A stretch of 29,656 bases of DNA from Fonticula alba ATCC 38817 (taxonomy: Eukaryota > Protista > Nucleariida), in assembly GCA_000388065.2 (NCBI GenBank), contig KB932304.1; one strand, 5' to 3'. Numbering within the stretch: position 1 is the stretch's first letter; each line of letters starts with the position of its first letter. Below, one piece after another: positions 121 to 29,656 of this stretch. The notes beneath the pieces were generated by a model. That model had not been told where the DNA came from and did no database searches. It was given only the letters and a program-made list of their open reading frames with translations. Position numbers and translations under genes: made by a program.

Positions 121-151
121 TATTAAACAAAGCAGGGAGCTGTTTTGTTTA
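86..151 (-). terminator. Two stem-loops between orf214 and element A (terminator/processing-like)
   Basis: AAAAAATC/GATTTTTT (88-110) and AAACAAAGCAG-ggag-CTGTTTTGTTT (125-150, 11 bp with one G.T). Function is inferred. Confidence 0.45.
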
Positions 152-190
152 GTTTATATTCAGTTGTTTTGGTAGTAGATTTTTTAGTTA

Positions 191-9336: not shown

Positions 9337-9395
9337 GCCAGGCAAGGGGATTCGAACCCATTCGCAGGTAAAAACCTGCTCTTTCCTAGACCTGG
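9337..9395 (-). ncRNA. tRNA-like element B (59 nt, D-armless, tetraloop hairpin instead of an anticodon arm)
   Basis: CCAGGTC-TAGGAAAGA-GCAGGT(TTTT)ACCTGC-GA-ATGGG(TTCGAAT)CCCCT-TGCCTGG-C; acceptor CCAGGT/GCCTGG pairs; canonical T-loop. Confidence 0.75.
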
Positions 9396-9467
9396 ATAAA
9401 AAAAAAATTATTAAATGTTTTTTATTTAATAAATAAAAAATCTATCAGGGATTTTTTTTATGGTATC
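9349..9467. repeat. ~120-bp dispersed direct repeat, copy 2 (copy 1 at 1-120)
   Basis: Direct sequence comparison. Confidence 0.95.
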
Positions 9468-9498
9468 GTCTTTGTTTATATTTAATATTTGTTATTGT

Positions 9499-9702
9499 GC
9501 TGTATTAGATTTTTTTTTTTATTTTATCTCCTATCACTGAGCATTGTAATATTAGACCATTTGTTTCCTAGTGTTTTTTATTTTATTATTTGGGTTTAAA
9601 GCTGTATTAGATTTTTTTTTTTATTTTATCTCCTATCACTGAGCATTGTAATATTAGACCATTTGTTTCCTAGTGTTTTTTATTTTATTATTTGGGTTTA
9701 AA
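9499..9702. repeat. Perfect 102-bp tandem duplication (2 units)
   Basis: 9499-9600 and 9601-9702 are identical (gctgtattaga-T11-attttatctcc...tgggtttaaa). Confidence 0.95.
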
Positions 9703-10553: not shown

Positions 10554-12784
<2,231 letters not shown>

Positions 12785-12817
12785 TTATGATTTGTTTATA
12801 GTATATTGGTTGTTTAT

Positions 12818-12890
12818 GGCGGACTATAGGATTCGAACCCATGACCAACAGAATCACAATCTGGTGCTCTACCAACTGAGCTAAGCCCGC
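12818..12890 (-). tRNA. trnH: tRNA-His(GUG)
   Basis: Cloverleaf; acceptor GCGGGCT/AGTCCGC; loop TTGTGAT; C73; the -1 base is T, not G. Confidence 0.95.
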
Positions 12891-12901
12891 ATAATTTTAG
12901 T

Positions 12902-12973
12902 TTGAGAAAATGGGATTCGAACCCATGCGTCATGAAATCAAAATCCATTGCCTTACCACTTGGCTATTCCTCA
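12902..12973 (-). tRNA. trnQ: tRNA-Gln(UUG)
   Basis: Cloverleaf; acceptor TGAGGAA/TTTCTCA; loop TTTTGAT. Confidence 0.95.
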
Positions 12974-13229
12974 ATGGAGTTTCCTCCTTATATTTTGTTA
13001 ATATTAGTTCTTAAATTTAGTTAATTTTTATTAGAATTAGATAAAACTTCTCTAACTAATGATACTTTTTCCATATTAACACAATATGAATATATCATGT
13101 TATAACTAATTGTAAAAAATACACAAAACATAAAAGAAAGATTAAAAAAAGTTAATAAATCTACTTGTGGCATAAAATATAATATATAATGGCTATATTA
13201 TCTGGAAGATTATTAATATATTATCTATT

Positions 13230-13312
13230 TGAGGGCGATGGGATTCGAACCCATGCTCACATTCGTGGATAGATTTACAGTCTATTGCTTTAAACCGCTC
13301 AGCCACACCCTC
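13230..13312 (-). tRNA. trnY: tRNA-Tyr(GUA)
   Basis: Cloverleaf with long variable arm; loop CTGTAAA. Confidence 0.95.
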
Positions 13313-13314
13313 AA

Positions 13315-13386
13315 TGAGTTTAACAGGACTCGAACCTGCGACCAACGGATTAAAAGTCCGCTGCTCTACCACTGAGCTATAAACTC
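13315..13386 (-). tRNA. trnK: tRNA-Lys(UUU)
   Basis: Cloverleaf; acceptor GAGTTTA/TAAACTC; loop CTTTTAA. Confidence 0.96.
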
Positions 13387-13506
13387 TTATTTATAAAGTT
13401 AAATAACCCCCATTCAGTCTAATTTATTTTACTATTCCTTTACGATCTAGTGTCGAACAGATTTAAGCTTCTAATATAATAGCATTTATTTAGGCTATAA
13501 CGTAGG

Positions 13507-13555
13507 AATTTCCTAATCCTGAAGAGATTGTCGTATCTTGCCCTGTTAGGAAATT
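13507..13555. promoter_or_regulatory. Inverted repeat in the divergent trnK/trnL spacer (candidate bidirectional promoter or origin)
   Basis: AATTTCCTAA (13507-13516) / TTAGGAAATT (13546-13555), with inner GAGAT/ATCTT pairing; lies between head-to-head genes. Confidence 0.4.
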
Positions 13556-13582
13556 ATTAGTTATGTTGTTATTCAAAAAATA

Positions 13583-13667
13583 GCCCGCTTGGTGGAACTG
13601 GCAGACACGACAGACTTAAAATCTGTTTTCAGTTTATGAAGTATTGGTTCGAGTCCAATAGTGGGTA
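13583..13667 (+). tRNA. trnL: tRNA-Leu(UAA)
   Basis: Cloverleaf with long variable arm; loop CTTAAAA. Confidence 0.95.
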
Positions 13668-13669
13668 TT

Positions 13670-13741
13670 GGGCTTATAGTTTAGTGGTAAAACGTTCCAC
13701 TCATGATGGATACTACGTGGGTTCGATTCCTACTAAGCCCA
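13670..13741 (+). tRNA. trnI: tRNA with CAU anticodon, probably tRNA-Ile(CAU, lysidine type)
   Basis: GGGCTTA/TAAGCCC acceptor and GTTT/AAAC D-stem resemble organellar trnI(CAU); loop CTCATGA. Identity is inferred. Confidence 0.8.
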
Positions 13742-14061
13742 ATGCTCCCGATCTTTTGATCGTAGCATACCACTATGATAGTTTATGGATGTATCTTTCG
13801 CACACACACATGCTCAGATATTACCTATCTCTTAATATTGCTTTTAGGCCACACAATATAATTTATATTTCATTTTTTTAAATGAGATTTGTTTTTTAAG
13901 TATTTATATTATAGTTTGTTTTAATTATAAAATTTTTTTTTATGAAAAATATTTTATTTGTGTATGTTCCAGCTAGTGAGACACTAGTGTGGGTTGTTAG
14001 TGATTAATTCAGTTGTGGATCAAAATTTAGATTTAGTTATTTTACTATTAGATTTATATTT

Positions 14062-14940
14062 ATGTATAATAGGTTAGATTTAATGGAGTTAAAAGCCTTA
14101 TATGAAAACATGATAGCCCCGATTTTATCTATTATTTTATTTATAGTTAAATTTTTGATGTATATAATTGGAATAATTTATATATCTAAAATACAACCAG
14201 TTTATATATCTGAAGTTTCATCGGACTATAATAATAAGTATTATTATTATGTTATTATTGTGATTTTTATTTTGGTTGTATATGGTTTGATAAAGATTTT
14301 GGGGTATTTTAAACCAGGTCTTTTTAGTATGAGGGGGTTTGTTTTTCCTTCTGCTTATTTGGGGGCTTATAATCTGATTATTTTTTTAGCTGGTAGGTTT
14401 TTCTCTAGGTTTTTTATTAGGTTGCTGTCTTCTTTGGTTTGGGGTCATGGTCTGACGGGTTATTATGCTTTTAGGGTAATTTTGGCTTTGTTTCCTTTTG
14501 TTTTTTTGGTTTGTTTTTTTAATTTTATTAATTTTGGGGGTTCGTTGGGTTATTTGTCAGTATTAGTGCCTGTGGGGTTTGTTATTTGGATTTTTAAATG
14601 TTTTTTATATTCATTTAAAAAGTTTGTTTTAACTAACTTGGAAATGATGTCTGACTTGTTGTTTGTTTATGTGTTGGGCTCATCTCCAGAGGAGGAAGTT
14701 GCTCTTATTGACATTGAGAAGTTGAATTTTAAATTGACTTCTCTTGCTTTTACCTTAGAGTTTAGAGAGGAGGACATTCCTCAGCTAAAACAAAAGTGGC
14801 TTTTGTTTGCTAGTGGAAAGTGTTCTATTTCTTTATATGACAATTATTTTAGGTTGGTTGGCTATGTTGCTATAGCCCTTAAAATCTTGGCTTGGGCGAA
14901 TATTTGTATTATTATGATGGATATGGGGGATGTTTCGTAG
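14062..14940 (+). CDS. Orphan multi-TM membrane protein, family A copy A1 (292 aa)
   Basis: Several hydrophobic spans; shares YIIxxIY and PxxFxxWxxK/RxxxxSFxxFV with orf275, orf208 and orf137, and KLTxxA with orf275. Confidence 0.8.
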   Translation: MYNRLDLMELKALYENMIAPILSIILFIVKFLMYIIGIIYISKIQPVYISEVSSDYNNKYYYYVIIVIFILVVYGLIKILGYFKPGLFSMRGFVFPSAYLGAYNLIIFLAGRFFSRFFIRLLSSLVWGHGLTGYYAFRVILALFPFVFLVCFFNFINFGGSLGYLSVLVPVGFVIWIFKCFLYSFKKFVLTNLEMMSDLLFVYVLGSSPEEEVALIDIEKLNFKLTSLAFTLEFREEDIPQLKQKWLLFASGKCSISLYDNYFRLVGYVAIALKILAWANICIIMMDMGDVS

Positions 14941-15346
14941 GTTTAGTTCTAATATTTTTAATGTAAGTTCCCCAAGAATGTATTATCATGCTGTAAAATT
15001 AGATTGGGATAAGATACCCAAGTATAAAAGTCAGCTTTCTGATCTGGGGGTATGCCCAAAGCATCTTTTAATAGTGGACGAGAATAGGACAGATGAGAAT
15101 GGTACTGTGCCTCTTATTAGTCAGGCAACTAGTAAGCCAGGTTATAGTTACGAGTCATTCTTATTAGACGAGAATAAAAATATTATTGGGGAAAACAAGC
15201 CCCAGCACCTGTTAAGATTTCAACAAAATAAAATTAGGCTTGATACGCAAGATTATAAATATATTAATAACAGTGAAGAATATTTAAATAGCCATAAAGA
15301 AAGTATAGATAACAATTTAAATATCGTTACAGATAATTCTGAGTAA
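14930..15346 (+). CDS. Orphan soluble protein, family B copy B1 (138 aa)
   Basis: Overlaps the A1 stop by 11 nt; HLLIVDE...ISQATS...SFLL...NIIGENKPQHLL aligns with orf202. Confidence 0.75.
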   Translation: MFRRFSSNIFNVSSPRMYYHAVKLDWDKIPKYKSQLSDLGVCPKHLLIVDENRTDENGTVPLISQATSKPGYSYESFLLDENKNIIGENKPQHLLRFQQNKIRLDTQDYKYINNSEEYLNSHKESIDNNLNIVTDNSE

Positions 15347-15359
15347 ATAACTATAAGGG

Positions 15360-15413
15360 ATAATCCCCAAGGGGATTATTCACAAACATAAAAACAAATA
15401 TTATATTTGTTTT
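15360..15413 (+). terminator. Two stem-loops between B1 and the chimeric tRNA
   Basis: ATAATCCC-caag-GGGATTAT (15360-15379) and AAAACAAATA-tta-TATTTGTTTT (15391-15413). Confidence 0.5.
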
Positions 15414-15414
15414 A

Positions 15415-15488
15415 GAGAATGTAGCTCAACTGGATAGAGCGATAGCCCTCTTAGCTATAGGTCATGGGTTCGAGTCCCATCATTCTCG
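15415..15488 (+). tRNA. Chimeric tRNA-like gene: Arg(UCU) D/anticodon arms on an Asp acceptor/T-arm, with aberrant anticodon loop
   Basis: GAGAATG-TA-GCTC(AACTGGATA)GAGC-G-ATAGC(CCTCTTA)GCTAT-AGGTC-ATGGG(TTCGAGT)CCCAT-CATTCTC-G; compare trnR 26369-26442 and trnD 26128-26201; has C33 and U37. Confidence 0.8.
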
Positions 15489-16203
15489 TTTTTATATATT
15501 TTATAGTTCTTTTATGTATATTATAAATTGCGTTGTATTTTTAATTGTTATATTAACAGTTAGTACATTTATGTTTTAAAACTAATTATTTAGTAGATGT
15601 TTAGGTGGTCTTTTATGATCTTTAATGCTATTTAATTCGTGTTTTGTTTTTTATTTTATGTTATTTCTTATATTTTAATTTTAGCTATTTTTAGGTGTGT
15701 ATTTTGATTATATAATTATTTGGGTTTTTTTTATATAAGGGGGTGTGTACAAGAGTATAAATCTATTAGCTGTATGTTTACTATAGAAGATATCATACAT
15801 TTATAAAAACTAATGGTATTTAATTAAATGATAGTTTTTATGGTTGTTTTGTCTGTTGATGTACTTTTCTTAAGTTTGTTTTTATGGTTTATGTTGTTAT
15901 ATTACTATCTGTTCTTTTGTTGAATCTGAATTTGTAGGGGGTTTATTATCTTGTTGGGTTTAATTGTCATAGTTCGTTGATTTAGTTTGTTATTTGCTGA
16001 GTTTGTTATCTGATAGCTTTTGTTTTGTTCAAGTATATTTTTCTATCTATGTCTTTGTACGTAGAGGTTACTTAGTTGGTTTTGCTCTATGGTTATGTTA
16101 TTAGTTGGTTGTTATTCTTTTAGTGACTGTAACAATTGTTATAGTATAAATAAAAATTTTATATAAGTTTTATTTAAAAAGTTAAGGGGTATACTATACT
16201 ATA

Positions 16204-16263
16204 TTATTTTATTTGTAGATTTTCTTTTAAATTAAAGAATTCTATAACAAGTTTCTTTCTCAT
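16204..16263 (-). pseudogene. Remnant 5' end of a family B gene (psi-B4)
   Basis: ATG 8 nt after the reconstructed A2 stop; MRKKLVIEFFNLK aligns with the orf202 start MKGDLIKHVFNLR; stop after 19 codons. Confidence 0.55.
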
Positions 16264-16271
16264 TTTGTTTT

Positions 16272-17016
16272 TTAAAGAATTATAATTAAGGAAATAAAGC
16301 TGAATGCTAATATTCTTGTATATATAATTATATCCTGATATTTTAATAAAGTGTCTCTAGGTTTAATACTGTAAAGAGCTAGTGCTTGTTCAACTAATTG
16401 GGGGGGTATGAGTTGAATTTAGGCCGCTTTCAATCGCCGATTTAGTTAGCCCTACAATTATTTCCTTAGTAATTTGATCCTTTGCTACACGCTCGAGCTC
16501 TTGTTCATCATACACTAGTAATTCTTTTAAAGCTTTTATTTTGCTTTCTATAAAATTTTCAAAAGATATTCTTACCATCCTAATAATCCAAATAGACAAA
16601 TTAAAAGGTACTATTAATATTACATATTGTGAAGATATTAAACCTAAAAAGAATAATATTAATGCTATTAGGTTTATAATAGGTTGGGTTATATCTGTAA
16701 TAATTTTCAGTATACTTAATAGGCTAGAGCTGCTTCGGCTTAATCTTACATGCATTATAAATTTATTGTAATATTCCAGCCTATAGTAATTTCCTATTAG
16801 ATGAAATAATACTTCAATAGCATTCCTTGATGTAATTGGTAATCCTTCAGTACCGAGTTTAAACTTTACTCGTAAATATTTTACGTATATAAAATATCCT
16901 ATTAAAATAATAAGTACAAAGATGTATTTCCATTTAGAATAAACAGGTAAGTCTCCTACCATTTTAGCAGTATGAAATGGTAGATATATTAATTGTATAA
17001 TATAAATAAATATCAC
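16272..17016 (-). pseudogene. Family A copy A2 (orf208 plus frameshifted C-terminus, ~247 aa if repaired)
   Basis: Gap-free paralog of orf275; GTG start only. An extra C in the C7 run (G7 at 16400-16406) shifts the frame; the continuation QLVEQALALYSIK...IYTRILAF matches orf275 DLVEKLLMLYKFK...FYARVFMW. Confidence 0.85.
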
Positions 17017-18416
17017 AACTACACAACATATTTAAATATAATATAATACCCCCCATTATTAACCCCTTATATATAATATTCAAGAACTCCCCTATAACAT
17101 AGGTATAAAGTAGGTACATTACTAATACATAATAAATACTAGATTTATACTAACCAAGATATTTTTACTTAAGCAGGACAGATGCATAAAACATGCACAT
17201 AATATTTAATATACGCACAAACCAACAAAACAGCCCTATAACAAACCCCACCTCAATTAATTTAAACTAAGCTACAATAATATAAAAGGAAGAATCAACT
17301 AGAACCCATAATATATACTTACTTTATAACTTACACTAGTATATTTATAAGAGACACCTAAAACACTATAAGTTATAAGTTTTATACTAAAATATAATAT
17401 ATTAACAGCATAGAAATATACTCGTATATATTATGGGCAGATTACCTGCAGAACAAATATCTAAATAAAAATAGACAGGCATAAATTAAGCTATAGATTA
17501 CAGTGAAGATGCCTATCACATAATATATACTACCAGAAATGTTTACACCTATTAATTTATAACACATAAACCCCCCCCACTAAACCAGTGTTATAGGCAC
17601 CTATCCTAATACCATATTCATAAAATACTAAAATTAGTATATTTCACCAGAGGATTCTAACTCACACAAATCATTTCTTTTACCGATAAAAGCCAGATTT
17701 AATATTCATATTTTCAAGAAAGGTTTAAGGTATTTACAGTAATGCTATATTATATACACTCAAATTAAATCACTTGAGTTTATATAAACCTAAATATATT
17801 TAACTATACTGGAAAATACATACACTATAATCTGAATTTCATAAGCCAGTAGTTCTAACAGTAACAGAGCTTAGTTAAGATTATAAAGTACTTTAGATTA
17901 CCCTCAGCCAACAAACCTTTATAGAGATGTAACCATACAGCTACTAACTTCTAACCTTTAGAAGTTATTGCCATACTCACCCTGGTAGAACACCAGCTTG
18001 TCACCAATACTAGGAATTATATAAAATAACCACTTGTTCTTCGTTACAAGCCCAACCGTATTTTAATACATAATATAACCTAATAATAGGTATATTATAA
18101 ATAAACTCAATATACTACTAACAGAATAAAACAACAAGAAATATAGACACAAAGCCAAAAACAACACTAAAACTACCATAATAGCCAATAAACATTATTA
18201 TATTAGGCCCAATACAACACTAAACTTATAATACCCCCTATTAATTAAATAAACACTAAAGCATTACTAAACTACTACTGATTTAACACTAAAACTTATA
18301 AATTAAAACAACCAAAACAAGACAATATAAAACATTCTAATATTTATTTTTTTAATCATAAACAAAGCCGACCCAAGAGGAGCCTAACCCATAAGCATAT
18401 ATCCCATTATAAAGCG

Positions 18417-18474
18417 ATCAGAGAATAGGATTCGAACCCATTCGTAGGTATTTACCTACTCTTCCAGACCCTGT
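18417..18474 (-). ncRNA. tRNA-like element C (58 nt)
   Basis: ACAGGGT-CTGGAAGA-GTAGGT(AAAT)ACCTAC-GA-ATGGG(TTCGAAT)CCTAT-TCTCTGA; compensatory changes relative to elements A and B. Confidence 0.7.
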
Positions 18475-18488
18475 AAAAACTTTATAAA

Positions 18489-18520
18489 TAAAGAAACCCC
18501 ATTTTCAATAGGGTTTTTTA
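18489..18520 (-). terminator. Stem-loop between orf202 and element C
   Basis: AAACCC (18494-18499) / GGGTTT (18511-18516), extended by A/T flanks. Confidence 0.4.
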
Positions 18521-18607
18521 GTGATTCTACAAAATTAGAAGTACTGGCTTATCCATTAATAACTATATTAACAATTTTGAGTAATTCTTGTTAGATCATA
18601 ATAAATT

Positions 18608-19216
18608 TTAATCAATAAAAATATTGTCCTCATCCTCTTTATTATAAGATGGGGGATATTGTGCAGAAGCTGATTCTTTATTAATAATTTTATCCAAAAA
18701 AACTTTTAATTCAATCAATGAGGCTACAGAGCCATGATCGGAAGTAATAAGTTCGCCTCTTTTATACGATATAAACAAACTTATTAGTAAAAGGATGTCC
18801 TTATCCTCTAATATTATTGAGGATGCATGCTCCTTGAAGTAATTAATAATTTTTTCCTCATTAATTTCTAAAAATTTATTATTATTTTTAGAGGATAAGA
18901 ACGTTAATTCTTTATTATCTATTTTTACTAGCTCTTTGGAGAGTACTATGTGCTGAGCCTTATTATCGTTATTAATGTTCCTCATCGATAATAATAAGCT
19001 TGATTTTCCAAGAGGTTGAGTGCTAGTGTAATTTGCTATTATTAAGGATTTTTCTTCTTCTTTTGTTTCTAACACTGCTAAAATGTGCGAGGATCTTAGG
19101 CCTAAGCTGGCACTGACCTGATCTCGGAGGCTTGTACTAGTAGTACTAAGTACTGCATTCTTTAAATGAAAACCACCTCTTAAATTAAAAACGTGCTTTA
19201 TTAGGTCCCCCTTCAT
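18608..19216 (-). CDS. Orphan soluble protein, family B copy B2 (202 aa)
   Basis: Starts 3 nt after the orf275 stop; HILAVLE...IANYTS...SLLL...NINNDNKAQHIV aligns with orf138. Confidence 0.8.
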   Translation of the reverse strand: MKGDLIKHVFNLRGGFHLKNAVLSTTSTSLRDQVSASLGLRSSHILAVLETKEEEKSLIIANYTSTQPLGKSSLLLSMRNINNDNKAQHIVLSKELVKIDNKELTFLSSKNNNKFLEINEEKIINYFKEHASSIILEDKDILLLISLFISYKRGELITSDHGSVASLIELKVFLDKIINKESASAQYPPSYNKEDEDNIFID

Positions 19217-19219
19217 TTT

Positions 19220-20047
19220 TTATGTAAACAGGACAAAACATAAGAATATCCACATAAAAACTCTAGCATAAAATAATTGCTCGAAAAACGAGTTTGAATA
19301 TTGTGAACCTTTAAATTTATAGAGCATAAGTAGTTTTTCTACAAGGTCGGACACTTGGTTCATAGTAACGCCACCCTCATGAGCTTCTTTCGTTAACTTG
19401 ACTACTATTAATTTACTGCTCTCATTGATGGCTATTCGTTTGATTTCAGCCTCATCATAAAGCATCAAACTCTTTAAAATTCCGATATAAGTTTCTACAA
19501 AAGTATCAAATGAAATATACCAGATTCTGATAACCCAAAGGCAAAAGTTTATGGGGATAATAATTAGCATGTAGCTCGTGCTAATTTGCCCTATCACAAA
19601 TAAGAATATTAATAGAAGATTTACCATTGGATGTATAGCCCCTATATAAAATATAAATAAGTTCATGACATAGGTACCTTTACGCCATTTTTCAATATAA
19701 TTTAAGAATCTATTATAATATTCGTCCCTATGCTTATTTCCTACCAAATGAAAAAATACTATTAAAGCCATCTTAGCAGATATTACAGGCCCCTCTTCTG
19801 GAGAATAAACGTATTTACGAAAATATTTAATATATGTTAAATATCCTATTAAAATAAGTAGTACAAGAATATATTTCCATTTAGAATATGATGCTAAGTC
19901 CTCTACCATTTTAGCAGTATGAAAAGGTAGATATATTAATTGTATAATATAAATAGTTAATGGGATTGTAATTGGAGTCAATGACACTGTATAGTAGAGA
20001 GGATCCTTTTTAAACTCTGTAAATATTGCCATACACTTAATTTTCAT
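19220..20047 (-). CDS. Orphan multi-TM membrane protein, family A copy A3 (275 aa)
   Basis: Intact ATG ORF with several hydrophobic spans; paralog of orf208, orf292 and orf137. Confidence 0.85.
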   Translation of the reverse strand: MKIKCMAIFTEFKKDPLYYTVSLTPITIPLTIYIIQLIYLPFHTAKMVEDLASYSKWKYILVLLILIGYLTYIKYFRKYVYSPEEGPVISAKMALIVFFHLVGNKHRDEYYNRFLNYIEKWRKGTYVMNLFIFYIGAIHPMVNLLLIFLFVIGQISTSYMLIIIPINFCLWVIRIWYISFDTFVETYIGILKSLMLYDEAEIKRIAINESSKLIVVKLTKEAHEGGVTMNQVSDLVEKLLMLYKFKGSQYSNSFFEQLFYARVFMWIFLCFVLFT

Positions 20048-21903
20048 TATAAATTTATAAACATCAGCTTTAGTCTAAGATTGTATATTATACATATATA
20101 TATATAATATTCAAATCTCATTAAACACCAAATAATAATAACATAAAATAAATACAAGAATTTTAATACAAAATATAACGCTAATAAATTCTAAATATAA
20201 AATTAATGTATTTATTAATCCTTAAGGTCAGGGTTGCTAAGGTCTTGTCAGACGGGTTAGTTTCTCTGGGGCTTATGGTACACCTTATTTAGTGTGGTTT
20301 ATTCACCCTATATAAGTTATATTTGATTTTTTTATAGGATATTGGTGTGGTAGGTGCTGGTTCTATAGCTGTGTATTTGATGGCTATCTTCTCCATTTTT
20401 ACTGAGGTTTGTGTGCTCTGTGTTATCTGAGTGTTAGTGTTTTCCGTGCTTTGGATGTTTCTGTGTTTCAGCTTATAATTTTTAGTTTTGGTGTGTTAGA
20501 CTATATGGTAGTGATTAGTTATGTTGTTATTATATATATTCTATATCTTAATATATATTATTTGTTTTATTGTGGTGGTATTTATGGTCTCTAGGGTGTA
20601 AGAGTTTAGCTTCTATTCTAATACTTTTTAGGTGTGTATTTTCTTTAGCTGTTTATTAGTATTTATAGACTTGTAGGTTTTTCTAGTTTGTTTAATATAT
20701 TCTAGTTAAGGCTGTGGTGTTTGTAATATGTACGGTTTAGATGGTGAAGTAACAATCTTTATAGGAGTATGGGGATTATATTTAATTGTTTTATCGTAAT
20801 CTTAGTTGTGTATAAATTACCCTCTAGAGGCTCTATGTTGAGAGAAGGGCTGGTTATGTATTAGTTTTATATTTTAAGTATCTGTTGTATTGATTGTAGT
20901 CTCTAGCCTTTTTAATTTAGATTTGATTATAGGAAATAATTTTTGACTGTGGTTTATACTTGTTTGTATTTACAAAATTTAAGGTTTAATTTTTATTTAA
21001 TCTATTGGGTATATTAGTATTAGATCTAGAGGTATTGTTATGGTGTTTTAGTACATTTTTTATTCAGTTATGTATGTTTTCCTGTTACTTCAGTAATTTT
21101 ATTATAAATTACTGTTATAGTATACTTATACTGTGATCTAATTATAGTAGCTTGTGGTTTGGTACAGTTAGTGTACGGACTAACAGGCTGTCTATACCTA
21201 TTATTTATAATCTGTTGGCAGTGGTAAGATTCTATAGGGCTATTTTTATGTTGAACCTGATGGAGATTTTCCTCTGTTATGTACTGCTTAGTCTACTACA
21301 ATAGCTCTATAGCTAACATAAGAATTTTTGTTATGTTTTATTAAGTACTATTGGCATAGTTTCTATTTGTGTATCAGCAGCTGTTTTATTCGTATAGTTA
21401 AGCTGTATCTGGGCTTAGTAGTGCTCTGTGTTTATTATCCTGTTATGAGATGTATTCTCATGGTTTGTTGTTATAATGTATGTACAATGGGTATATTATA
21501 TATAATATACCTTTCTATATGGTGTTCTAAGAATTTAAATTATGCCTTGTTATAGCGTGTTTCCTTGAAATTATTAAGCTGGAGCTTTTATTTAGGTTAC
21601 TATACTTTCTTTTAATAATGTTTATGATCTTACTTAGAACCATTATTTATTTTATTTGAGTGGTGTATAGTTTCGGTACTTAAGTTTATTTTGGTTTTAT
21701 GTTCATTTCTGTGTTTTATGAGTGTAATAAAGTTAAGTTTTAGTTGAGTGCTAATTCAGGGTGTTTTTTTTTTATTTAGTTAGGTCTTACTATGGGCTGT
21801 TTAGCTGTAATTTGCTTTTGGTGTGTACTATGTTTTGTTGTTTTGGCCTATAGGTCCTTGCAGAATATTAAAGTATTGTTTCATTAGTCTGGTGGTATTT
21901 TAT

Positions 21904-22719
21904 TTAGTTTAGTGTTGGGCTGTATGGCCAGTAGTATACGCTTATAAACATGAATATCCATACTATATCCACGAAGTGGTAGTACCATGCACAAGTGTCG
22001 AATCCTACATGGCTTGAGTTTGTGTTTAATCCGTATACAGTTCTGTATAGGCATGTTATTAAATAGATTGTTCCTATTATTATATGTATCCCATGAAATC
22101 CTGTACACATAAAGAATGTAGATCCATATACAGAGTCAGCTATGCTGAATGTAGAGTCTATGTATTCTAAGAATTGAAGACCTGTGAATGACATTGCTAA
22201 GATGATAGTTATTAATAAAGACACAGTTGTATGAGGTTTATTTGCTGTAATAATAGCGTGATGTCCCCATGTTAATACAACTCCAGATGCTACTAGTACT
22301 ATCGTGTTTAATAATGGAACACTTAAAGGGTTCAATGCTTGAATTCCTTTTGGAGGCCAAACCACACCTAAATCTACTGAAGGAGCTAAGCTTGAATGAA
22401 AAAACGCCCAAAATAAAGCTACGAAAAACATTAGTTCAGATACTATAAATAAAATAAACCCAATTTTTAATCCTCTTTGTACTAAGTATGTATGACACCC
22501 AGATAATGTACTTTCTTTTGAAACATCTACAAACCAACAAAAAAATGTTAACAATACTAATAAAAACCCTATTAATAATGTGCTAGATCCACCATTGAAT
22601 CCATGCATAAACAGAACAGCAGATTTCATGCTCAACATTAATGAAAAAGCCATGAAAATAGGCCATGGACTGTTATCTAAAATATGATAAGTATGATTTT
22701 TATATCTCATAAAAATCAA
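21904..22719 (-). CDS. cox3: Cytochrome c oxidase subunit 3
   Basis: HTYHILDNSPWP, FIVSELMFF, FWAFFHSSLAP, VWPPKGI, PLLNT, TGFHGIH, AWYYHFVDIVW. Confidence 0.99.
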   Translation of the reverse strand: MIFMRYKNHTYHILDNSPWPIFMAFSLMLSMKSAVLFMHGFNGGSSTLLIGFLLVLLTFFCWFVDVSKESTLSGCHTYLVQRGLKIGFILFIVSELMFFVALFWAFFHSSLAPSVDLGVVWPPKGIQALNPLSVPLLNTIVLVASGVVLTWGHHAIITANKPHTTVSLLITIILAMSFTGLQFLEYIDSTFSIADSVYGSTFFMCTGFHGIHIIIGTIYLITCLYRTVYGLNTNSSHVGFDTCAWYYHFVDIVWIFMFISVYYWPYSPTLN

Positions 22720-22756
22720 GTTTAAATTTTAATTATTTTATTAATACAAAATAATC

Positions 22757-22828
22757 CTCTTCAGGATGGATTCGAACCATCAACCGAACGATTAACAGTC
22801 GTTTGCTCCACCATTAAGCTACTGAAGA
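22757..22828 (-). tRNA. trnN: tRNA-Asn(GUU)
   Basis: Cloverleaf; acceptor TCTTCAG/CTGAAGA; loop CTGTTAA; G73. Confidence 0.95.
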
Positions 22829-22830
22829 AT

Positions 22831-22911
22831 TGGGCTAGTGTGGGAATCGAACCCAGACAAAGTCGATAGATCATGAGCCTATTAGGGAGACCACTCCCTC
22901 CGCACCAGCCT
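22831..22911 (-). tRNA. trnM: tRNA-Met(CAU), atypical, probably initiator
   Basis: Anticodon arm ATAGG(CTCATGA)TCTAT; acceptor GGCTGG/CTAGCC; T-loop TTCGATT; irregular D-arm and variable region. Confidence 0.75.
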
Positions 22912-22939
22912 TTAAAAATAATGTATTATGAATATATGT

Positions 22940-23302
22940 TTGGGTTATTCAGTTTTTAGTATTACTTAGCTACACACATTACTGTGCTTACACTTGTAAC
23001 CTATTTTAATAATTTGTAATAGTCTATTACATCTGAGTTAAAAACTAGCTTAAAGATGTATTTCCTGCTTAGATGCTTTCAGCAGTTAATAGTTCGATAC
23101 GTGGCTACCCAACGATGCTTCTGGAGAAACAGTTGGTACACTATTGGTATCTCCTCCCCGGTCCTCTCGTACTAGGGTCGGCTTCTTTAAGTTTTTATAC
23201 ATTAGTAGTAGATAGGGACCGAACTGTCTCACGACGTTCTAAACCCAGCTCACGTACCACTTTAATTGGCGAACAGCCAAACCCTTGGAACCTCCTTCAG
23301 CT

Positions 23303-23337
<35 letters not shown>

Positions 23338-25191
23338 GACTCCGTCGATATGAGCTCTTGGGAGTCATCAGCCTGTTATCCCTAGAGTATCTTTTATCCG
23401 TTGAGCGATAGCCTTTCCACTAAGTACTATCGGATCACTATGGCCGACTTACGTCTCTGGTTGACTTGTTTGTCTTTCAGTTAAGCAGGCTTATGCCATT
23501 ACACTCTACAATAGATTTCCGACCTATTTGAGCCTACCTTCGCACACCTCCGTTACTCTTTAGGAGGTGACCGCCCCAGTCAAACTACCCGCTATAAATT
23601 GTCCCTTATGGTGAGTCTAGACGATCAGTAAGGATGGTATTTCACTGCTGCATTACTTGCAATCCATCTATGCTACTCTAACTGTTCGAATAGACTATTT
23701 ATAGTTATAGTAAAGATTCATAGGGTCTTTCCGTCTTACTACTAATACTCCGCATCTTCACGGAGAATGCAATTTCACTGAGTTATTGTTGGAGACAGCG
23801 GAGAAGTCGTTACACCACTCATGCAGGACGGAACTTACCCGTCAAGGAATTTCGCTACCTTTGGACCGTTATGGTTACAGCCGCCGTTTACTGGGGGATA
23901 TATAGTTAGCTCTCACCAACTAATTTAGCCTTCCAGAACCGGGCAGGTGTCATACCCTATACTTCATCTGATAAGATTTAGCAGAGTATTGTGTTTTTAG
24001 TAAACAGTCGCTCCTCCCTATTATGTGCCACCTCTTTCGAGGCCCTCCTTATCCCTAAGTTACAGAGTCATTTTGCCGAGTTCCTTCAACAATATTATCT
24101 CATAACTTCAGTATACTCTACTTGTCCACCAGTGTCGGTTTATAGTACGGTATTTAAATTTTAAGGATTAACCTTAAAATAGTTTAAAACTAAAATATTA
24201 AAATTTTCCTGAAGAAAACATTATATTATAATATTAGCCATATATAAATATAATACTTTGAATTCTCGTCCTTTAATACATAATTACCCATCATTCTTGT
24301 TAGAACTTAGGGGCCGACTAACTCTACGCTATTAACTATCACGTTAGAAAACCTTAGACATTCAGCAATAATGATTATTGTTACAATATTTACGTTACTC
24401 ATGTCAGCATTCTCTCATCTGATTCCAAAATTATATCTTTCAATATAATTTTCATATAATACAGATTGTTCTGCTACCATTAAACTCACGTTTAATCCAC
24501 AATGTCGGAAAAATACTTAGCCCCTCTACATTTTCGGCGCCAAATTACATCAACCAGTGAGCTGTTACGCTTTCTTTAAAGGATGGCTGCTTCCAAGCCC
24601 ACCTCCTGGATATCTTCGTATATATGACTTCCTTAATAGCACTTAGTATTTATTTTGGGTCCTTAATTTGTGGTCTGGGCTGTTCCCCTCTTGACTATGG
24701 ACCTTAGCACCCATAGTCTGATTGTTATAAAATATTCTTTGGTATTCAGAGTTTACTAAAATATAGTATAACATTAGTTACCCATAAATTTGCAGTGCTT
24801 TACCCCCAAAGATTAACGTATAACACTATACCTAAATATATTTCGCAGAAAACCAGCTATTTCCAAGTTTGATTAGCCTTTCACCCCTAACAACAGATCA
24901 TCCCAATATTTTGCAACATATTTGGGTTCAGTCCTCCTTTTGGATTTCTCCAACCTTCAACTTGTCCATAGTTAGATCACTTGGTTTCGGGTCTAATTTA
25001 TATAACTAACGCAATTTAATACTCGCTTTCACTAGGCCTACATCTAACGATTTAAGCTTGCTATATAAATTAACTTGCTGACCCATTATGCAAAAGGTAC
25101 GTTGAAACTATAAAAAAAGTCACAACTGCTTAATCACTTTTAGTTTCAGGTTCTATTTCACCCCCTTCCATCTACATGGGTACTTTTCATA

Positions 25192-25222
<31 letters not shown>

Positions 25223-25590
25223 TAATATGTATACTTAGGCTTAGAAGGTGGTCCTCCTATATTCAAGCAAAATAACATTCCGCTTTACTCACTCATACCA
25301 AAACAAAAAAAAAAAAAAATTCAAATCTAATACGGGACTCTCACCCTCTATGGAATTTCTAAGATTCAAACAAGTATTAAGCCTGGTCCGCACTCGCTCA
25401 CCACTACTAACGGAGTCTCGGTTGATTTCCTTTACCTGATGCTACTAAGATGTTTCAATTCACATCGTATAATCCCATTATTTAAACAGTTTTTCACATG
25501 GAAACTCTGGTATTCCAGATAAACCTACACCAGAAATATCGTATCAACGTCCAAACATATTAGCCTATACATCCACTAAAAGCTTCAAAA
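22940..25590 (-). rRNA. rnl: Large-subunit rRNA (ends approximate)
   Basis: Reverse complements of universal LSU motifs: gcttagatgctttcagc, ggcgaacagccaaacccttgg, gatgagccgacatcgaggtgccaaac, ccgccccagtcaaactaccc, tttcgctacctt, ttatgcaaaaggtacg; no intron-sized insertion. Confidence 0.97.
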
Positions 25591-25684
25591 TACTACCCCA
25601 AACAAAAAATTACATTAAAAACGTGCGAAGATAAGCACCTACGCCCTAAACAAACAAAAACAAAAAAAACAAAAAACCCAAGAC

Positions 25685-25757
25685 TCAGGATGGTCGGGCT
25701 CGAACCGACAACCTTAGGTACCCAAAACCTACGCACAGCCAATTATGCTTCATCCTG
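25685..25757 (-). tRNA. trnP: tRNA-Pro(UGG)
   Basis: Acceptor CAGGATG/CATCCTG; TAGGT(TTTGGGT)ACCTA. Confidence 0.92.
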
Positions 25758-25768
25758 CCCAAAATAAA

Positions 25769-25852
25769 TGGATAGAGTAGGATTCGAACCTACGATACAA
25801 ACTGTATAATAGTTTTCAAGACTATCTCTTTAAACCACTCAGACATCCATCC
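25769..25852 (-). tRNA. trnS: tRNA-Ser(UGA)
   Basis: Long variable arm; loop CTTGAAA; acceptor GGATGGA/TCTATCC. Confidence 0.95.
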
Positions 25853-25925
25853 ACCCCACCAGCCCCTAAAACAAAAACAAAAAAATTTTACATTTTAGAA
25901 AAAGATAAGGATACAGACATATCTA

Positions 25926-25949
25926 ACACACACACACACACACACACAC
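25926..25949. repeat. (AC)12 microsatellite
   Basis: Direct reading; lies between trnS and trnF. Confidence 0.95.
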
Positions 25950-26021
25950 TGTCCAGAGGTAGAATCGAACTACCGACACAAGGATTTTCAGTCCTATGCT
26001 CTACCACTGAGCTACCTGAAC
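25950..26021 (-). tRNA. trnF: tRNA-Phe(GAA)
   Basis: Cloverleaf; loop CTGAAAA. Confidence 0.95.
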
Positions 26022-26036
26022 AAAAACAAAAAAAAA

Positions 26037-26108
26037 AGGAGTATCTAGGAATCGAACCTAGATCAAACGAATATGAGTCGATTGTACTAACCATTGTACT
26101 AATACTCC
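26037..26108 (-). tRNA. trnM: tRNA-Met(CAU), probably elongator
   Basis: Acceptor GGAGTAT/ATACTCC; loop CTCATAT. Confidence 0.85.
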
Positions 26109-26127
26109 AACAAAAAATATATAAAAA

Positions 26128-26201
26128 CGAGAATGATGGGACTCGAACCCACGACCTTTAACGTGACAAGCTAATACTCTACCAGACTAAGTTACATCCT
26201 C
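26128..26201 (-). tRNA. trnD: tRNA-Asp(GUC)
   Basis: Acceptor GAGGATG/CATTCTC; loop TTGTCAC; G73. Confidence 0.95.
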
Positions 26202-26220
26202 TTATTAATTAATATTATAC

Positions 26221-26292
26221 TGCGGATAATGGGACTCGAACCCATAGCATTTGCTTGGAAGGCAAAGGATTTAGCCATTAATCGATACCCGC
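26221..26292 (-). tRNA. trnG: tRNA-Gly(UCC)
   Basis: Acceptor GCGGGTA/TATCCGC; loop CTTCCAA. Confidence 0.95.
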
Positions 26293-26293
26293 C

Positions 26294-26367
26294 ATGCTTG
26301 TAGCTTAACTGGATAGAGCGTTAGAATACGAATCTAAAGGTTAGAAGTTCGAATCTTCTCAGGCATA
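26294..26367 (+). tRNA. trnR: tRNA-Arg(ACG)
   Basis: Acceptor ATGCTTG/CAGGCAT; loop ATACGAA; D-loop ACTGGATA. Confidence 0.93.
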
Positions 26368-26368
26368 A

Positions 26369-26442
26369 CACACTCTACAGGACTCGAACCTGTGACCTAT
26401 AACTTAGAAGGCTATTGCTCTATCCAGTTGAGCTAAGAGTGT
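26369..26442 (-). tRNA. trnR: tRNA-Arg(UCU), canonical copy
   Basis: Acceptor ACACTCT/AGAGTGT; loop CTTCTAA. Confidence 0.95.
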
Positions 26443-26454
26443 TTTATTAAAATA

Positions 26455-26527
26455 GGACTTATAACTCAGTGGTTAGAGTATACACCTGATAAGTGTAAAG
26501 TCGGTAGTTCGATTCTACCTAAGTCCA
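26455..26527 (+). tRNA. trnI: tRNA-Ile(GAU)
   Basis: Acceptor GGACTTA/TAAGTCC; loop CTGATAA. Confidence 0.95.
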
Positions 26528-26533
26528 TAGCTA

Positions 26534-26604
26534 AAGACTATAGTTTAATGGTAAAATAGAGGCCTCCAAAGCCTTCGTTCTGGGTTCGAATCCGAGTAGT
26601 CTTG
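26534..26604 (+). tRNA. trnW: tRNA-Trp(CCA)
   Basis: Acceptor AAGACTA/TAGTCTT; loop CTCCAAA; consistent with TGG-only Trp usage. Confidence 0.93.
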
Positions 26605-26605
26605 T

Positions 26606-26938
26606 TTATGTAAAATTTGAATATATCCCAATTAAATACACTACAAAAAACAATATATGCCTACCACCCTCAAAACCAAATTCAAACTTAAATGTAAATG
26701 GAGGACAAAACAAAAAATTTGAATATAGAAAACCATAATTCGGAGCGACAAACCATGATGGATAAAACTCGGGCCTCCACCAATCATCATGATCAATACA
26801 ACCCACTATAGGAGCACCCAACTCATTTTCCATTAAACGGGAATTACTAATGTATCCCAATGAATCCACAAGAGAACCTACATCATCATTGTATAATAAA
26901 AGACACACCACTGATACCAGAAAAAACCCAGACACCAC
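26606..26938 (-). CDS. Possible orphan ORF or remnant (110 aa, GTG start) directly after atp9
   Basis: Open frame with a W/P/G-containing composition unusual for spacer DNA; no convincing start and no recognised homology. Confidence 0.3.
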   Translation of the reverse strand: MVSGFFLVSVVCLLLYNDDVGSLVDSLGYISNSRLMENELGAPIVGCIDHDDWWRPEFYPSWFVAPNYGFLYSNFLFCPPFTFKFEFGFEGGRHILFFVVYLIGIYSNFT

Positions 26939-26978
26939 TAAGTATTTTATTAGTACCCTCCCAAGTAAGCCTCTGTTC

Positions 26979-27206
<228 letters not shown>

Positions 27207-27340
27207 CTATACTAAGAACAAAGAAGACAGCCAGTTAACACTACAAACAACACAAATAAGAACACATATTAAAAAAAAAACAAAATAAAACCCACAAAAA
27301 ACACATGAGCATAAGACCCCATTAGAAATTAACCTAAGGA

Positions 27341-27413
27341 TGCACAATACAGGACTCGAACCCGTGACCCGTTCGGTGTAAACGAAATGCTCTACCAACT
27401 GAGCTAATCATGC
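27341..27413 (-). tRNA. trnV: tRNA-Val(UAC)
   Basis: Acceptor GCATGAT/ATTGTGC; loop TTTACAC. Confidence 0.95.
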
Positions 27414-28378
27414 AACTAATAAAAAAAAAACAAGAAAATGTCCAAAAATAAAACGTTATTCAATAAAAAAACACCAACAAACAAACCAAAAAACTCTTAG
27501 AACATACACGCACAAAACAAAATAATCACAACCATTACACTGGAAGAACCAAATCTAAACGTTAAATTATAATATCAAGAACATACAAAACAAGCACAAA
27601 ACAACTACATAAAAACTGTTATATATCCATATAAATTATATACATAAGATAAATTATACGAACCTAACCCATAAGCACATGCTTAACCATAAACCACTCA
27701 GGCAATAGAATACTTCCACAATACACAACATTAAGAGTATTCAGTGTAATATAATACCCACTCGTACAGTAAACACTACCAGAGTATAGGAGAGTATCTA
27801 AACAAGATGTCAGAGAGAAAGAAAAAAACAATTACTTGAGACAACAAAATAAAACCACAAGAAAACAGATGGAGTACCCACAAGTAACTTCGGCACAGAA
27901 GCGGACAACGTTTAACCACCAATGAGCAGAGGTGAATATTGGAAAACATATGTAAATTCTATAACAATTTACCAATAAGCTGTTTAGATACAGCAACCTA
28001 CTAGAATTGGGCAAAGCGTTATAAACATCACTCAGACCAGTAAAATAGGGGAAGTAACACAATACCCAGATACCCAATGGAAAGGAAAATAGAGAACGAT
28101 GGGAATCAATGAAGTAAACCCGGCAAACAGAACACCTCTCACAAATGGGTGAGGAACATCAACAAAATAATAAAAAATTATTAAATGTTTTTCTTGTTTT
28201 TGCATTTGTTTTTGTTCTTTGTCCGGAAAATTTTTGTTCTAATTGAGTAAGGTTTGTTTAGTGTGCTTTGTTATTATATAGTTATTCTTTAGAGATTTAA
28301 CTAGTATTAGAAGTATATCTGAAATCAGATAGTTATTATTTTAACTCCTATGGTTTTAATTTATCTCTATCACTCTTG

Positions 28379-28642
28379 TTATTTTATTTTATTTAAGGCT
28401 ATTTTAATTTCACCTAAATTCATTAAATCTATAGAAGAATATTCCTGAATTGCTGAAAACAACAATTCAGGGCTATTCTTGTCAATTTGTTGACATAACC
28501 TAGCCTGTTGTTTTAAAAGGTACCTAGTTTTGCTCGTATCTTCCTTTAAATACTGCTTCTCAATTATTAATAAGTCTTTGCTAAAAACGGTTGTTTGTCC
28601 ATATGGTTTAAATTTATAATCTAATATGGGCCCTTTAGACTC
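28379..28642 (-). pseudogene. Start-less 87-codon frame: C-terminal remnant of a family B gene (psi-B5)
   Basis: QTTVFSKDLLIIEKQYL aligns with orf202 QHIVLSKELVKIDNKEL, and NLGEIKIALNKI with SLIELKVFLDKI; in-frame stops upstream. Confidence 0.7.
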
Positions 28643-28688
28643 TTAGATCTTTTACTAGAGAGAGGTTATATCACAAGAAAGTCAATTA

Positions 28689-29222
28689 TTAGTCAATATC
28701 AGAGCAATCTTTATTCTCTAAACCCTCCAAATCAAAGCATGATTGGATAGGCTTACTAAAATGACCTTCATACTCTAAAAGCATATTTTTTGCTATCAAT
28801 AGTCTTGGCTTATCTAAAAGTGTCTTGTTTCTAAAATAAGTTATTAAGACTATGTCTTGCCCATAGATATCCTCATAAAAGCGCCCATTTTTTTCCCATA
28901 TCTCAAAATGACTGCTTTTTATATAAAGGGGTTTTGTTGGAGTTACTCCATATTGTGGTAAATTTTTAAGGGCTAAATCTAGTTGATAGGACAAACTATC
29001 AACCCTTAAGTGCTTTATAGAGTTAGAGTGAGTCATTTGTTGTATAACATGATACTTATTTAAATATTTATCTTGATAGCAGATGAGAGGGTGTTGGACA
29101 TTAACATTCGATTCGCTAGCTCTTTCTGCGTAAAGGGCTCTAAACTTAGGCTTTATCAATCCGAATTTTAAACCTGTATTTTGTTTAGTTGTACTTAGGA
29201 CAATCCTGGTAATATTTTTCAT
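28689..29222 (-). CDS. Orphan soluble protein, probable family B copy B3 (177 aa from the ATG overlapping the A4 stop)
   Basis: ATGA stop/start overlap with A4; VLSTT shared with orf202; HPLICYQDKYLNKYHVIQQMTHS aligns gap-free with HILAVLETKEEEKSLIIANYTST. Confidence 0.7.
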   Translation of the reverse strand: MKNITRIVLSTTKQNTGLKFGLIKPKFRALYAERASESNVNVQHPLICYQDKYLNKYHVIQQMTHSNSIKHLRVDSLSYQLDLALKNLPQYGVTPTKPLYIKSSHFEIWEKNGRFYEDIYGQDIVLITYFRNKTLLDKPRLLIAKNMLLEYEGHFSKPIQSCFDLEGLENKDCSDID

Positions 29223-29656
29223 ATGACTTGTAGTAACCAATAACACAAAAAAAGTCTACATAGCACTATGTACTTAGTAGTTAACCCTCTTGATACTTCG
29301 AGGTTTTTTTCAAATTCTAAATGACCTCTAGAAACTCTAGCTAGCATCATCCAGTCTTTTAAGACCGTATTCACACAAAGTTGCTCGTTCTCTTGTGAGT
29401 TCGCTCCCTCCTTGATACTAAAAACAGCAGTTGTGGTAACCCTGTCTATAGAAGTCCCTTTCTCCAGATTAAGGTCAAGTAACCCTGTATAATCACTATC
29501 CCTCCAATCTACAAAAATTTCGAAACTCTTTATAAAATTGTTTATTAACCAGCATCCAAAGCTAACGCACACACAAAATTTTAGCAAAAATACCGGCAAA
29601 TAACCCATTACTATCAGTACATAAAGAGTCATAGAAACACCCTTAAAAATAAAAAA
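29219..29656 (-). CDS. Family A copy A4, C-terminal part (frame stays open to the window edge)
   Basis: VSFGCWLINNFIKSFEIFV matches VGFVIWIFKCFLYSFKKFV of orf292; LKDWMMLA vs KQKWLLFA; upstream codons FFIFKGVS are open. Confidence 0.75.
   Translation of the reverse strand, partial: FFIFKGVSMTLYVLIVMGYLPVFLLKFCVCVSFGCWLINNFIKSFEIFVDWRDSDYTGLLDLNLEKGTSIDRVTTTAVFSIKEGANSQENEQLCVNTVLKDWMMLARVSRGHLEFEKNLEVSRGLTTKYIVLCRLFLCYWLLQVI

Follow-up and report, generated by a model that had tools for sequence, protein, structure and literature searches.

The stretch of DNA analyzed here, hereafter the window, is 29,656 nucleotides long and comes from the nucleariid protist Fonticula alba ATCC 38817 (contig KB932304.1 of assembly GCA_000388065.2). 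It carries diverged copies of a two-gene unit in which a gene for a hydrophobic membrane protein, called A, is followed at most copies by a gene for a soluble protein, called B. The window corresponds to bases 1-29656 of a 45,189-bp contig (C211) in an assembly of 31 Mb. It is mitochondrial DNA (mtDNA): Pfam recognizes cox1, cox2, cob, a ccmC-like gene, and rps12; cox3 and atp9 were recognized by eye in the translations; and the large rRNA gene and 20 tRNA genes are also present, with a G+C content of 22-44%. Three other contigs are mitochondrial (C212, 17,980 bp; C213, 5,828 bp; C214, 10,845 bp). Directly after the window, the 2244 bases of C211 29657-31900 are N. The members of the two families found in the window are the following:

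14062-14940, plus strand: A1, intact, a five-segment membrane protein of 292 aa
14930-15346, plus strand: B1, intact, 138 aa, overlapping A1 by 11 nt
16275-17043, minus strand: psi-A2, a degenerate A copy with 45-47% identity to A3
18608-19216, minus strand: B3, intact, 202 aa, the B domain plus a C-terminal extension of about 60 aa, 3 nt past the A3 stop
19220-20047, minus strand: A3, an intact membrane protein of 275 aa
28382-28642, minus strand: possible B remnant (C-terminal third) downstream of B4; a weak match to positions 89-134 of the wide B profile (E 0.006, six-frame set)
28689-29222, minus strand: B4, intact, 177 aa, the most diverged B, with a 4-nt overlap (ATGA) with the A4 stop
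29219-29656, minus strand: A4, C-terminal half, its frame open to the window end and its 5' half hidden by N

The sequence-only reading of this DNA, made without database searches, had assigned the four hydrophobic open reading frames (ORFs) to one family, and alignment confirms this. A2 (16390-17016) and A3 (19220-20047) share 47% identity (expect value, E, 5e-64), and A1 can be aligned with A3 over its full length, with 22% identity (E 3e-8). A4 reaches E 0.011 by BLASTP; its score is 21.4 bits with a hidden Markov model (HMM) built from A1, A3, A5, and A6 alone and 33.5 bits with a wider one. When A4 was shuffled 2000 times, globally or within 15-residue windows, which keep the local hydrophobic layout, these scores were never attained (maxima 16.4 and 18.3). 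On the sequence evidence, A1-A4 are true paralogues. Because the A4 frame is open at the last base and its HMM match begins at profile position 136, the window holds only the C-terminal half of this copy. In psi-A2, a TAA stop truncates the N-terminus, and the C-terminal membrane segment lies in a different frame (16275-16418), with a frameshift before it. A has about five hydrophobic segments, with a soluble loop of some 80 residues between the fourth and the last; in the three Fonticula copies measured, this loop contains 11-12 acidic and 7-9 basic residues.

The B family is recognizable at three of these sites. B1 and B3 match each other with E 2e-6; B4 was missed by BLASTP and was found by a four-sequence HMM (E 1.3e-5). 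It had been proposed that a B-family ORF follows every A, which is the case for A1, A3, and A4, with junctions of -11, +3, and -4 nt, respectively. It is not the case for psi-A2, after which neither HMM nor tblastn detected any B remnant in 15489-16420. The proposal that the unit exists in four copies holds for A within the window, while the family as a whole is larger. A profile search of the whole assembly returned six B copies (five intact and a broken psi-B7), all on C211 or C212 and none nuclear. The mitochondrial assembly contains at least five intact and two decayed copies of the module, which occurs in no nuclear contig; three of the copies lie outside the window:

C211 33602-34887: A5/B5
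C212 4288-5597: A6/B6
C212 about 7090-8463: A7/B7, decayed

With psi-A2 and A7/B7 both broken, the earlier description of copies ranging from intact to decayed is accurate. The sequence-only reading recognized neither protein as a standard mitochondrial gene product, and the searches agree: A and B have no Pfam match, and Pfam also locates nad5, nad1, atp6, and tatC at sites separate from A and B. A word-index search of the A family against 5.8 billion proteins gave no match. An ORF resembling rpl14, together with nad3 and nad4L, was recognized by eye only. The tatC gene in this mtDNA is divergent and lies on C212 (L009:1703-2359; Pfam TatC, E 2.4e-7).

Two non-coding blocks accompany the modules. 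One is conserved downstream of both B3 and B6 (window 18209-18366 versus L009:3681-3847, 79% identity). The other lies directly upstream of A3 (window 20048-20202) and recurs in inverted orientation at C211 35621-35773, upstream of an unrelated 186-aa ORF (82%); it may be a shared expression signal.

The start of A1 lies within a repeat that connects several of the copies:

12735-14271, no strand assigned: 1.5-kb repeat, with three copies in the mitochondrial contigs (self-BLASTN)

This repeat is 99.3% identical to C211 32275-33811 and 99.9% identical to C212 6823-5304. Within it lie the opening 50 nt of cox1, six tRNA genes, and the beginning of A1, A5, and A6 (the start codon and some 70-98 codons), so that it terminates inside the A gene. 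Because the repeat carries the A start, the N-terminal ~98 aa of A1 are identical to those of A6, and the first ~70 aa to those of A5, after which the proteins diverge abruptly to 20-30% identity. At two copies, the cox1-start side of the repeat also enters A-related sequence; in the C212 copy it leads into the decayed A7. Beyond the N stretch, on the minus strand of C211 31901-32324 (L007:2901-3324), a chimeric ORF directed toward A4 begins with the first 16 residues of cox1, continues with nine residues of the cob N-terminus (KRLSGLSHL), and then runs into a membrane sequence with two segments. The visible part of this chimera matches the A profile weakly (E 0.004). Elsewhere, C213 (L107:1-1147) opens with 95 nt identical to the A1-start region, so that the first eight A codons (MYNRLDLM) head an unlike 359-aa ORF without Pfam match; to judge from this identity, the C213 ORF is another start-site capture by the repeat.

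The shared repeat and the chimeric starts therefore suggest that the copies are made and reshuffled by repeat-mediated recombination. This departs from the earlier suggestion of a selfish or mobile module, in that no sign of autonomous transposition machinery was found for it. The possibility of a plasmid-derived unit likewise gained nothing: no polymerase domain was present in the flanking ORFs scanned (plasmid collections were not searched), and the neighbors of the modules are tRNA genes and core genes.

The pair had also been regarded as an orphan, which no longer holds. A B profile run against 1.84 billion cluster representatives returned 15 matches, of which three are B4, B1, and B3 of the window, one (P0004) is a fragment identical to B6, and eleven lie outside this genome. 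One of the eleven, P0007, a 3048-aa nuclear beta-helix repeat protein, was rejected as a B relative, its score being the sum of eight weak repeat matches. The ten true outside relatives, all small proteins, come from assemblies of public reads and from an NCBI assembly, an ENA contig, and a metagenome contig of JGI; the samples with relatives include runs ERR1762251/2 and SRR23924980, assembly SMFF01, JGI 3300030611, and ENA ERZ28580848. One of the source runs belongs to a gut-metagenome study of ant-eating mammals. A metagenome scan with a three-sequence B alignment gave two loci, both in one assembly, and the wide B alignment, searched against the 5.8 billion proteins by word index, retrieved only P0009 (an outside relative), B3, and P0004.

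Genomic context was examined at 11 outside loci, namely those of the ten relatives and a second SMFF01 locus from the metagenome scan, all on AT-rich contigs. Each of the 11 has a hydrophobic ORF upstream of B, at -13 to +2 nt, or fused to it (L017). An HMM built from Fonticula A sequences alone matched the upstream ORFs of L023 (9e-39), L020 (1e-35), and L018 (2e-12), as well as the N-terminal 345 residues of the L017 fusion (7e-13), and the wider A HMM matched those of L138 (1e-25) and L143 (3e-13). By these profile matches, 6 of the 11 upstream ORFs or fused parts, which are all that could be tested independently, are A relatives. The fusion itself, from the JGI contig, is a 471-aa protein with an A part and a B part in one polypeptide, matched by both HMMs; its gene adjoins a bacterial-type small-subunit rRNA gene, and the contig has 25% G+C. 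A supported B subclade (L022, P0010, P0012, and the second B of L021) pairs with a different-looking membrane ORF. The upstream ORFs of the L022/L139/L141 type are mutually related (E 3e-37), and hhalign does not connect them with A (E 0.025, probability 2%); they are treated here as positional equivalents only.

The coupling claimed between the two genes is thus well borne out. A always comes first and adjoins or overlaps B, both in the intact Fonticula pairs and in the outside loci fetched, and in one case the two are fused. Over 12 pairs, the similarity of the A C-terminus is correlated with that of B (Spearman rho 0.57, Mantel p 0.0008), which fits a divergence of A and B together, as a unit. 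Several diverged modules may be present in one sample: one run contains four pairs, one assembly two, and one contig two tandem B genes. In the last case (L021:773-1904), the tandem genes belong to different subgroups and stand behind a single membrane ORF. As a separate observation, about 5.8 kb of the 7.3-kb ENA contig (L018:1402-7285) contains no ORF of at least 90 aa (code 1 or 4), no tRNA, and no Rfam match.

The ratio of nonsynonymous to synonymous substitution rates (dN/dS) could be estimated for a single pair in which synonymous sites are not saturated, formed by two loci from the same assembly. It is 0.49 for A and 0.51 for B, values that indicate fast evolution under constraint. Among the Fonticula copies, dN/dS is uninformative because dS is 1-3 (saturated) or because the shared repeat confounds the estimate. 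The B phylogeny is mostly unresolved; from similarity scores alone, certain Fonticula copies might have their nearest relatives among the outside pairs and not within this genome.

These data bear on the alternative that duplication and drift in AT-rich DNA have left A and B behind as ORFs without a function. Some of the copies are clearly broken. Four RNA runs, out of 24 listed by species label alone, gave zero reads over 14060-20050, which says nothing about transcription in either direction. However, reading frames have stayed intact at identities of 20-30%, independent samples preserve the motifs and the gene order, a fusion exists, and dN/dS is about 0.5 in the sole measurable pair. This explanation is strongly disfavored, and we give it next to no weight.

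Some indication of what B might do comes from its predicted structure. Across 16 B sequences, a Thr (in T-[ST]) and a Gln are invariant and a His (in D-x-x-H-P) is nearly so, the conserved positions being H44, T68, and Q93. An AlphaFold2 model of B6 has a predicted local distance difference test (pLDDT) score of 80.2 and a predicted template modeling (pTM) score of 0.75, with a beta-alpha-beta5-alpha topology. With this model, Foldseek gave no significant match, and MazF, ToxN, and CcdB occupied most of the top ranks. VIA-align was run against 48,161 chain representatives, and 15 of its top 16 rows were toxins of the CcdB, MazF, Kid, ToxN, AbiQ, and CptN types, rank 13 being an Sm-like protein. 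The toxin rows have Z values of 4.4-6.5, with 88-112 residues aligned over model positions 14-145; beyond them, the list falls to generic SH3-like domains with Z of at most 3.8. When the Foldseek list was re-aligned, MazF-mt3 reached Z 7.1 (107 of 113 residues, root-mean-square deviation 3.1 A) and CcdB Z 7.0; 89 chains had Z of at least 5, and of the 48 entries listed from these, 47 belong to the toxin class. In the ESM Atlas, a search by shape with the B model returned PemK/MazF and ToxN clusters (template modeling scores 0.47-0.53), and a language-model feature search with P0005 placed PemK/MazF clusters second and third at 0.87, which is a lead only. On the strength of the model, B (about 140 aa) is predicted to have the fold of the CcdB/MazF/Kid/ToxN toxins.

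A toxin-antidote pair was one of several roles suggested by the sequence-only reading, and it is now specifically supported by the B model, whose likeness is confined to CcdB/MazF/ToxN toxins; no sequence method, for its part, links B to toxins. Tight coupling, occasional fusion, gene order with short overlaps, a predicted toxin-type fold with conserved polar residues at positions resembling an active site, many diverged and decaying copies, and patchy occurrence add up to a toxin-antitoxin-like module. The reading that we prefer, at a rough probability of 0.4, is that A-B is an addiction module of this kind, with B as a toxin-fold protein and A as its membrane-anchored partner. B would be a stable toxin of the mitochondrial matrix, probably of the endoribonuclease type. 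A, a five-segment inner-membrane protein with an acidic soluble loop of about 80 aa, would be its cognate, shorter-lived neutralizer and might be degraded by AAA proteases of the membrane. Any organelle or cell that lost the module-bearing mtDNA would then be poisoned; the carrier DNA would thus tend to be kept, and the modules would be driven to diversify toward many specificities. Recombination at the 1.5-kb repeat would give rise to new copies while old ones decay, with the repeat giving an upstream region, a start codon, and the first 70-98 A codons to variable cassettes composed of the A C-terminus and B.

Several points weigh against the addiction module. A is unlike any known antitoxin, being a multi-pass membrane protein without a DNA-binding fold; if its last segment spans the membrane, the loop and the C-terminus are on opposite sides, which complicates contact between loop and B. 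Moreover, mixing of matrix contents through mitochondrial fusion could blunt an addiction effect. The A model is poor (pLDDT 59) and has no meaningful match in the PDB or the ESM Atlas. When B6 was modeled together with the loop of A6 (residues 178-268), the complex score was 0.00, which counts neither for nor against contact. On the side of B, the fold comes from one model, that of B6, built on a five-sequence alignment, the other four models having pLDDT 52-65, and no Z value reaches 8, under which the tool advises caution. With B1, the feature search gave nothing usable, so that the PemK/MazF lead was not replicated, and with B6 it returned only unnamed bacterial and phage clusters. None of the 16 B members has a Pfam match at E <= 1; profile searches of NCBIfam, PADLOC, and the PDB with B were blank; and hhalign gave E 0.24 (probability 0.3%) against 32 diverse PemK/MazF sequences and no match against 80 MazF orthologues.

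In addition, the PF02452 profile has no match in the whole genome. The best hhalign path, which is not significant, is collinear over 105 columns; in it, the B His-Pro falls on the PemK Arg-Pro and the B Q-x-T-S on P-x-T-[ST], positions that we take to be those of the catalytic Arg29 and Thr52 of E. coli MazF, for RNA cleavage. Judged by the sequence features that define these families, B does not belong to PemK/MazF or CcdB, nor does A count among the known antitoxins. Therefore, the claim made here is that the pair works like a toxin-antitoxin module, not that it is one.

The same results can be read as a fortuitous fold match, in which A and B would be a lineage-specific pair of membrane and peripheral proteins with an ordinary mitochondrial function, such as accessory subunits or assembly factors, passively multiplied by a repeat-rich, recombining genome. 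Every sequence-based toxin search was negative, Z stays under 8 for a model from a shallow alignment, and this genome has many other orphan ORFs as well as repeat-made chimeric starts. However, when 48,161 chains were scanned without bias, a single toxin superfamily took 15 of the top 16 places, aligned over nearly the full length and with a clear drop afterwards. The presence of many highly diverged copies per genome in several samples would be unusual for structural subunits, and standard genes that such proteins might have represented are present separately (tatC, atp6, and nad1, with the rpl14-like ORF by eye). We consider this explanation unlikely.

A third possibility accepts the toxin-like fold and gives it a different use: B would be a MazF-like nuclease of benefit to the host, tethered to the membrane by A and processing or regulating mitochondrial transcripts, with paralogues for different targets. 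The fold evidence is the same as for an addiction module. The persistence of several diverged yet intact pairs and the constraint expressed by a dN/dS of about 0.5 agree with it, and the similarity scores that perhaps place Fonticula copies nearer to outside pairs would fit long-term retention. What speaks against a host function of this type is the patchy occurrence (15 matches in 1.84 billion cluster representatives), the decayed copies lying beside intact ones, and a sequence turnover that is extreme for a core processing factor. To our knowledge, moreover, no mitochondrial RNA-processing enzyme has a CcdB/MazF fold. This, too, is in our judgment an improbable account.

The roles could also be reversed, with the hydrophobic A as the harmful protein and the co-encoded B as its antidote or modulator, as in the open reading frames of plant cytoplasmic male sterility (CMS). 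CMS genes are typically chimeric, hydrophobic mitochondrial ORFs that result from repeat recombination and borrow their 5' ends. Features of Fonticula recall them: the multi-pass A takes its 5' end, including its start, from the recombination repeat; a chimeric ORF with a cox1 start lies nearby, at another copy of the repeat; and eight A codons head the C213 ORF. Plant CMS ORFs are single genes of recent origin, each restricted to a species and counteracted by nuclear restorers, whereas A-B forms a conserved family, present in several organisms, in which the partner is encoded alongside. Furthermore, to judge by the titles of the structures, all solved systems with this fold have the CcdB/MazF-type protein as their toxin, and the upstream place of A is that of the antitoxin in mazEF. 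The A-B fusion fits a tethered enzyme and its inhibitor more easily than a pore and its antidote, although it is still compatible with the latter. Such a reversal appears decidedly improbable.

Other features of this mtDNA were noted that concern its general organization. C211 and C212 are 100% identical at both ends, over 702 bp at the start (window 1-702) and 7,006 bp at the finish (C211 38184-45189 = C212 10975-17980); they represent either separate chromosomes that share their ends or recombination isomers of each other that the assembler collapsed. A family of dispersed repeats of 120-160 nt, with 85-97% identity, occurs at window positions 1-120, 9339-9498, 9472-9600, and 9574-9702, at C211 41046-41202, and at C212 3901-4053; it forms a short tandem run at about 9.3-9.7 kb, and one copy lies some 240 nt downstream of B6. 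For further mitochondrial ORFs of 938, 203, 214, 316, 266, and 731 aa, Pfam gives nothing beyond sub-threshold hits (E 0.056-0.44). Such ORFs are found at window 828-3644, 10554-11165, and 191-835, and at L008:2186-6172, and the 731-aa ORF sits at the right end common to C211 and C212.

The closest parallels to an addiction module of this form are MazEF, Kis-Kid, and CcdAB, which are type II toxin-antitoxin systems, with the type III systems ToxIN and AbiQ sharing the toxin fold. Like them, A-B is a two-gene, operon-like unit with the putative neutralizer first and small overlaps between the genes; mazE and mazF, with the antitoxin first, share one base. The downstream protein in the MazEF/CcdAB class is about 110-140 aa long, and B is predicted to have the same SH3-like barrel followed by a C-terminal helix. 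Many diverged paralogous pairs per genome are likewise a trait of both. A residue-level likeness to PemK is seen in the B Thr-Ser, at the collinear position of P-x-T-[ST] in the non-significant alignment. On the other hand, A-B has no detectable sequence homology to this class, B has a His in the place of the catalytic Arg of MazF (again in a non-significant alignment), and an extra helix lies between B strands 1 and 2 relative to the CcdB/MazF fold. The antitoxins of MazEF and CcdAB are small, soluble, DNA-binding proteins, whereas A has about 280 aa and five predicted membrane segments. Finally, unlike that class, A-B is encoded in a mitochondrial genome and is sometimes one fused polypeptide.

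A likeness of organization alone exists with the cdiA-CT/cdiI modules of contact-dependent inhibition (CDI) and with Rhs orphan modules. In these systems, as in A-B, a constant 5' region gives way abruptly to variable 3' cassettes, each followed by a small cognate gene, and extra or decayed 'orphan' cassettes lie close by. There is no homology between them and A-B; the constant part of A-B is just ~70-98 codons, and its variable large protein is a membrane protein, not a secreted toxin.

Known selfish elements of mtDNA are mostly introns, plasmids, and plant sterility ORFs. Full-text searches of a literature library gave no report of a MazF/CcdB-type module in any mitochondrial genome, and the sole toxin-antitoxin-like case found in mtDNA is a restriction-modification pair of katablepharids (PMC8099122). 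According to that paper, this HpaII-like, mitochondrion-encoded system is a two-gene module that has been proposed to be a selfish element of the toxin-antitoxin type, possibly biasing organelle inheritance; it was acquired recently from flavobacteria and consists of recognizable enzymes with demonstrated activity (Milner et al., 2021). A-B is similar in being a two-gene module in the mitochondrial genome of a protist. It differs in being multi-copy and highly diverged, with no recognizable bacterial relative by sequence.

A broader claim would be that A-B represents the first toxin-antitoxin family encoded by mitochondria, with a MazF/CcdB-fold toxin and a membrane-anchored antitoxin, occurring in several lineages of uncultured eukaryotes and exchanging cassettes through a repeat, and that it is a determinant of mtDNA retention, of competition between mitochondrial genomes, or of cytoplasmic incompatibility. 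In this full form, the claim is rather doubtful. If A-B is indeed an addiction module, it would provide a concrete and testable mechanism by which a mitochondrial genome enforces its own retention, and it would explain both competition with other mitochondrial genomes in the cell and the diversification into many copies. At least seven so far unexplained ORFs of this genome would also receive a predicted fold (for B) or a family (for A) for the first time, as would a set of metagenomic proteins that were previously unlinked. If the pair is not selfish, the conserved combination of a membrane protein and a MazF-fold protein, sometimes fused, would still be a new mitochondrial protein family.

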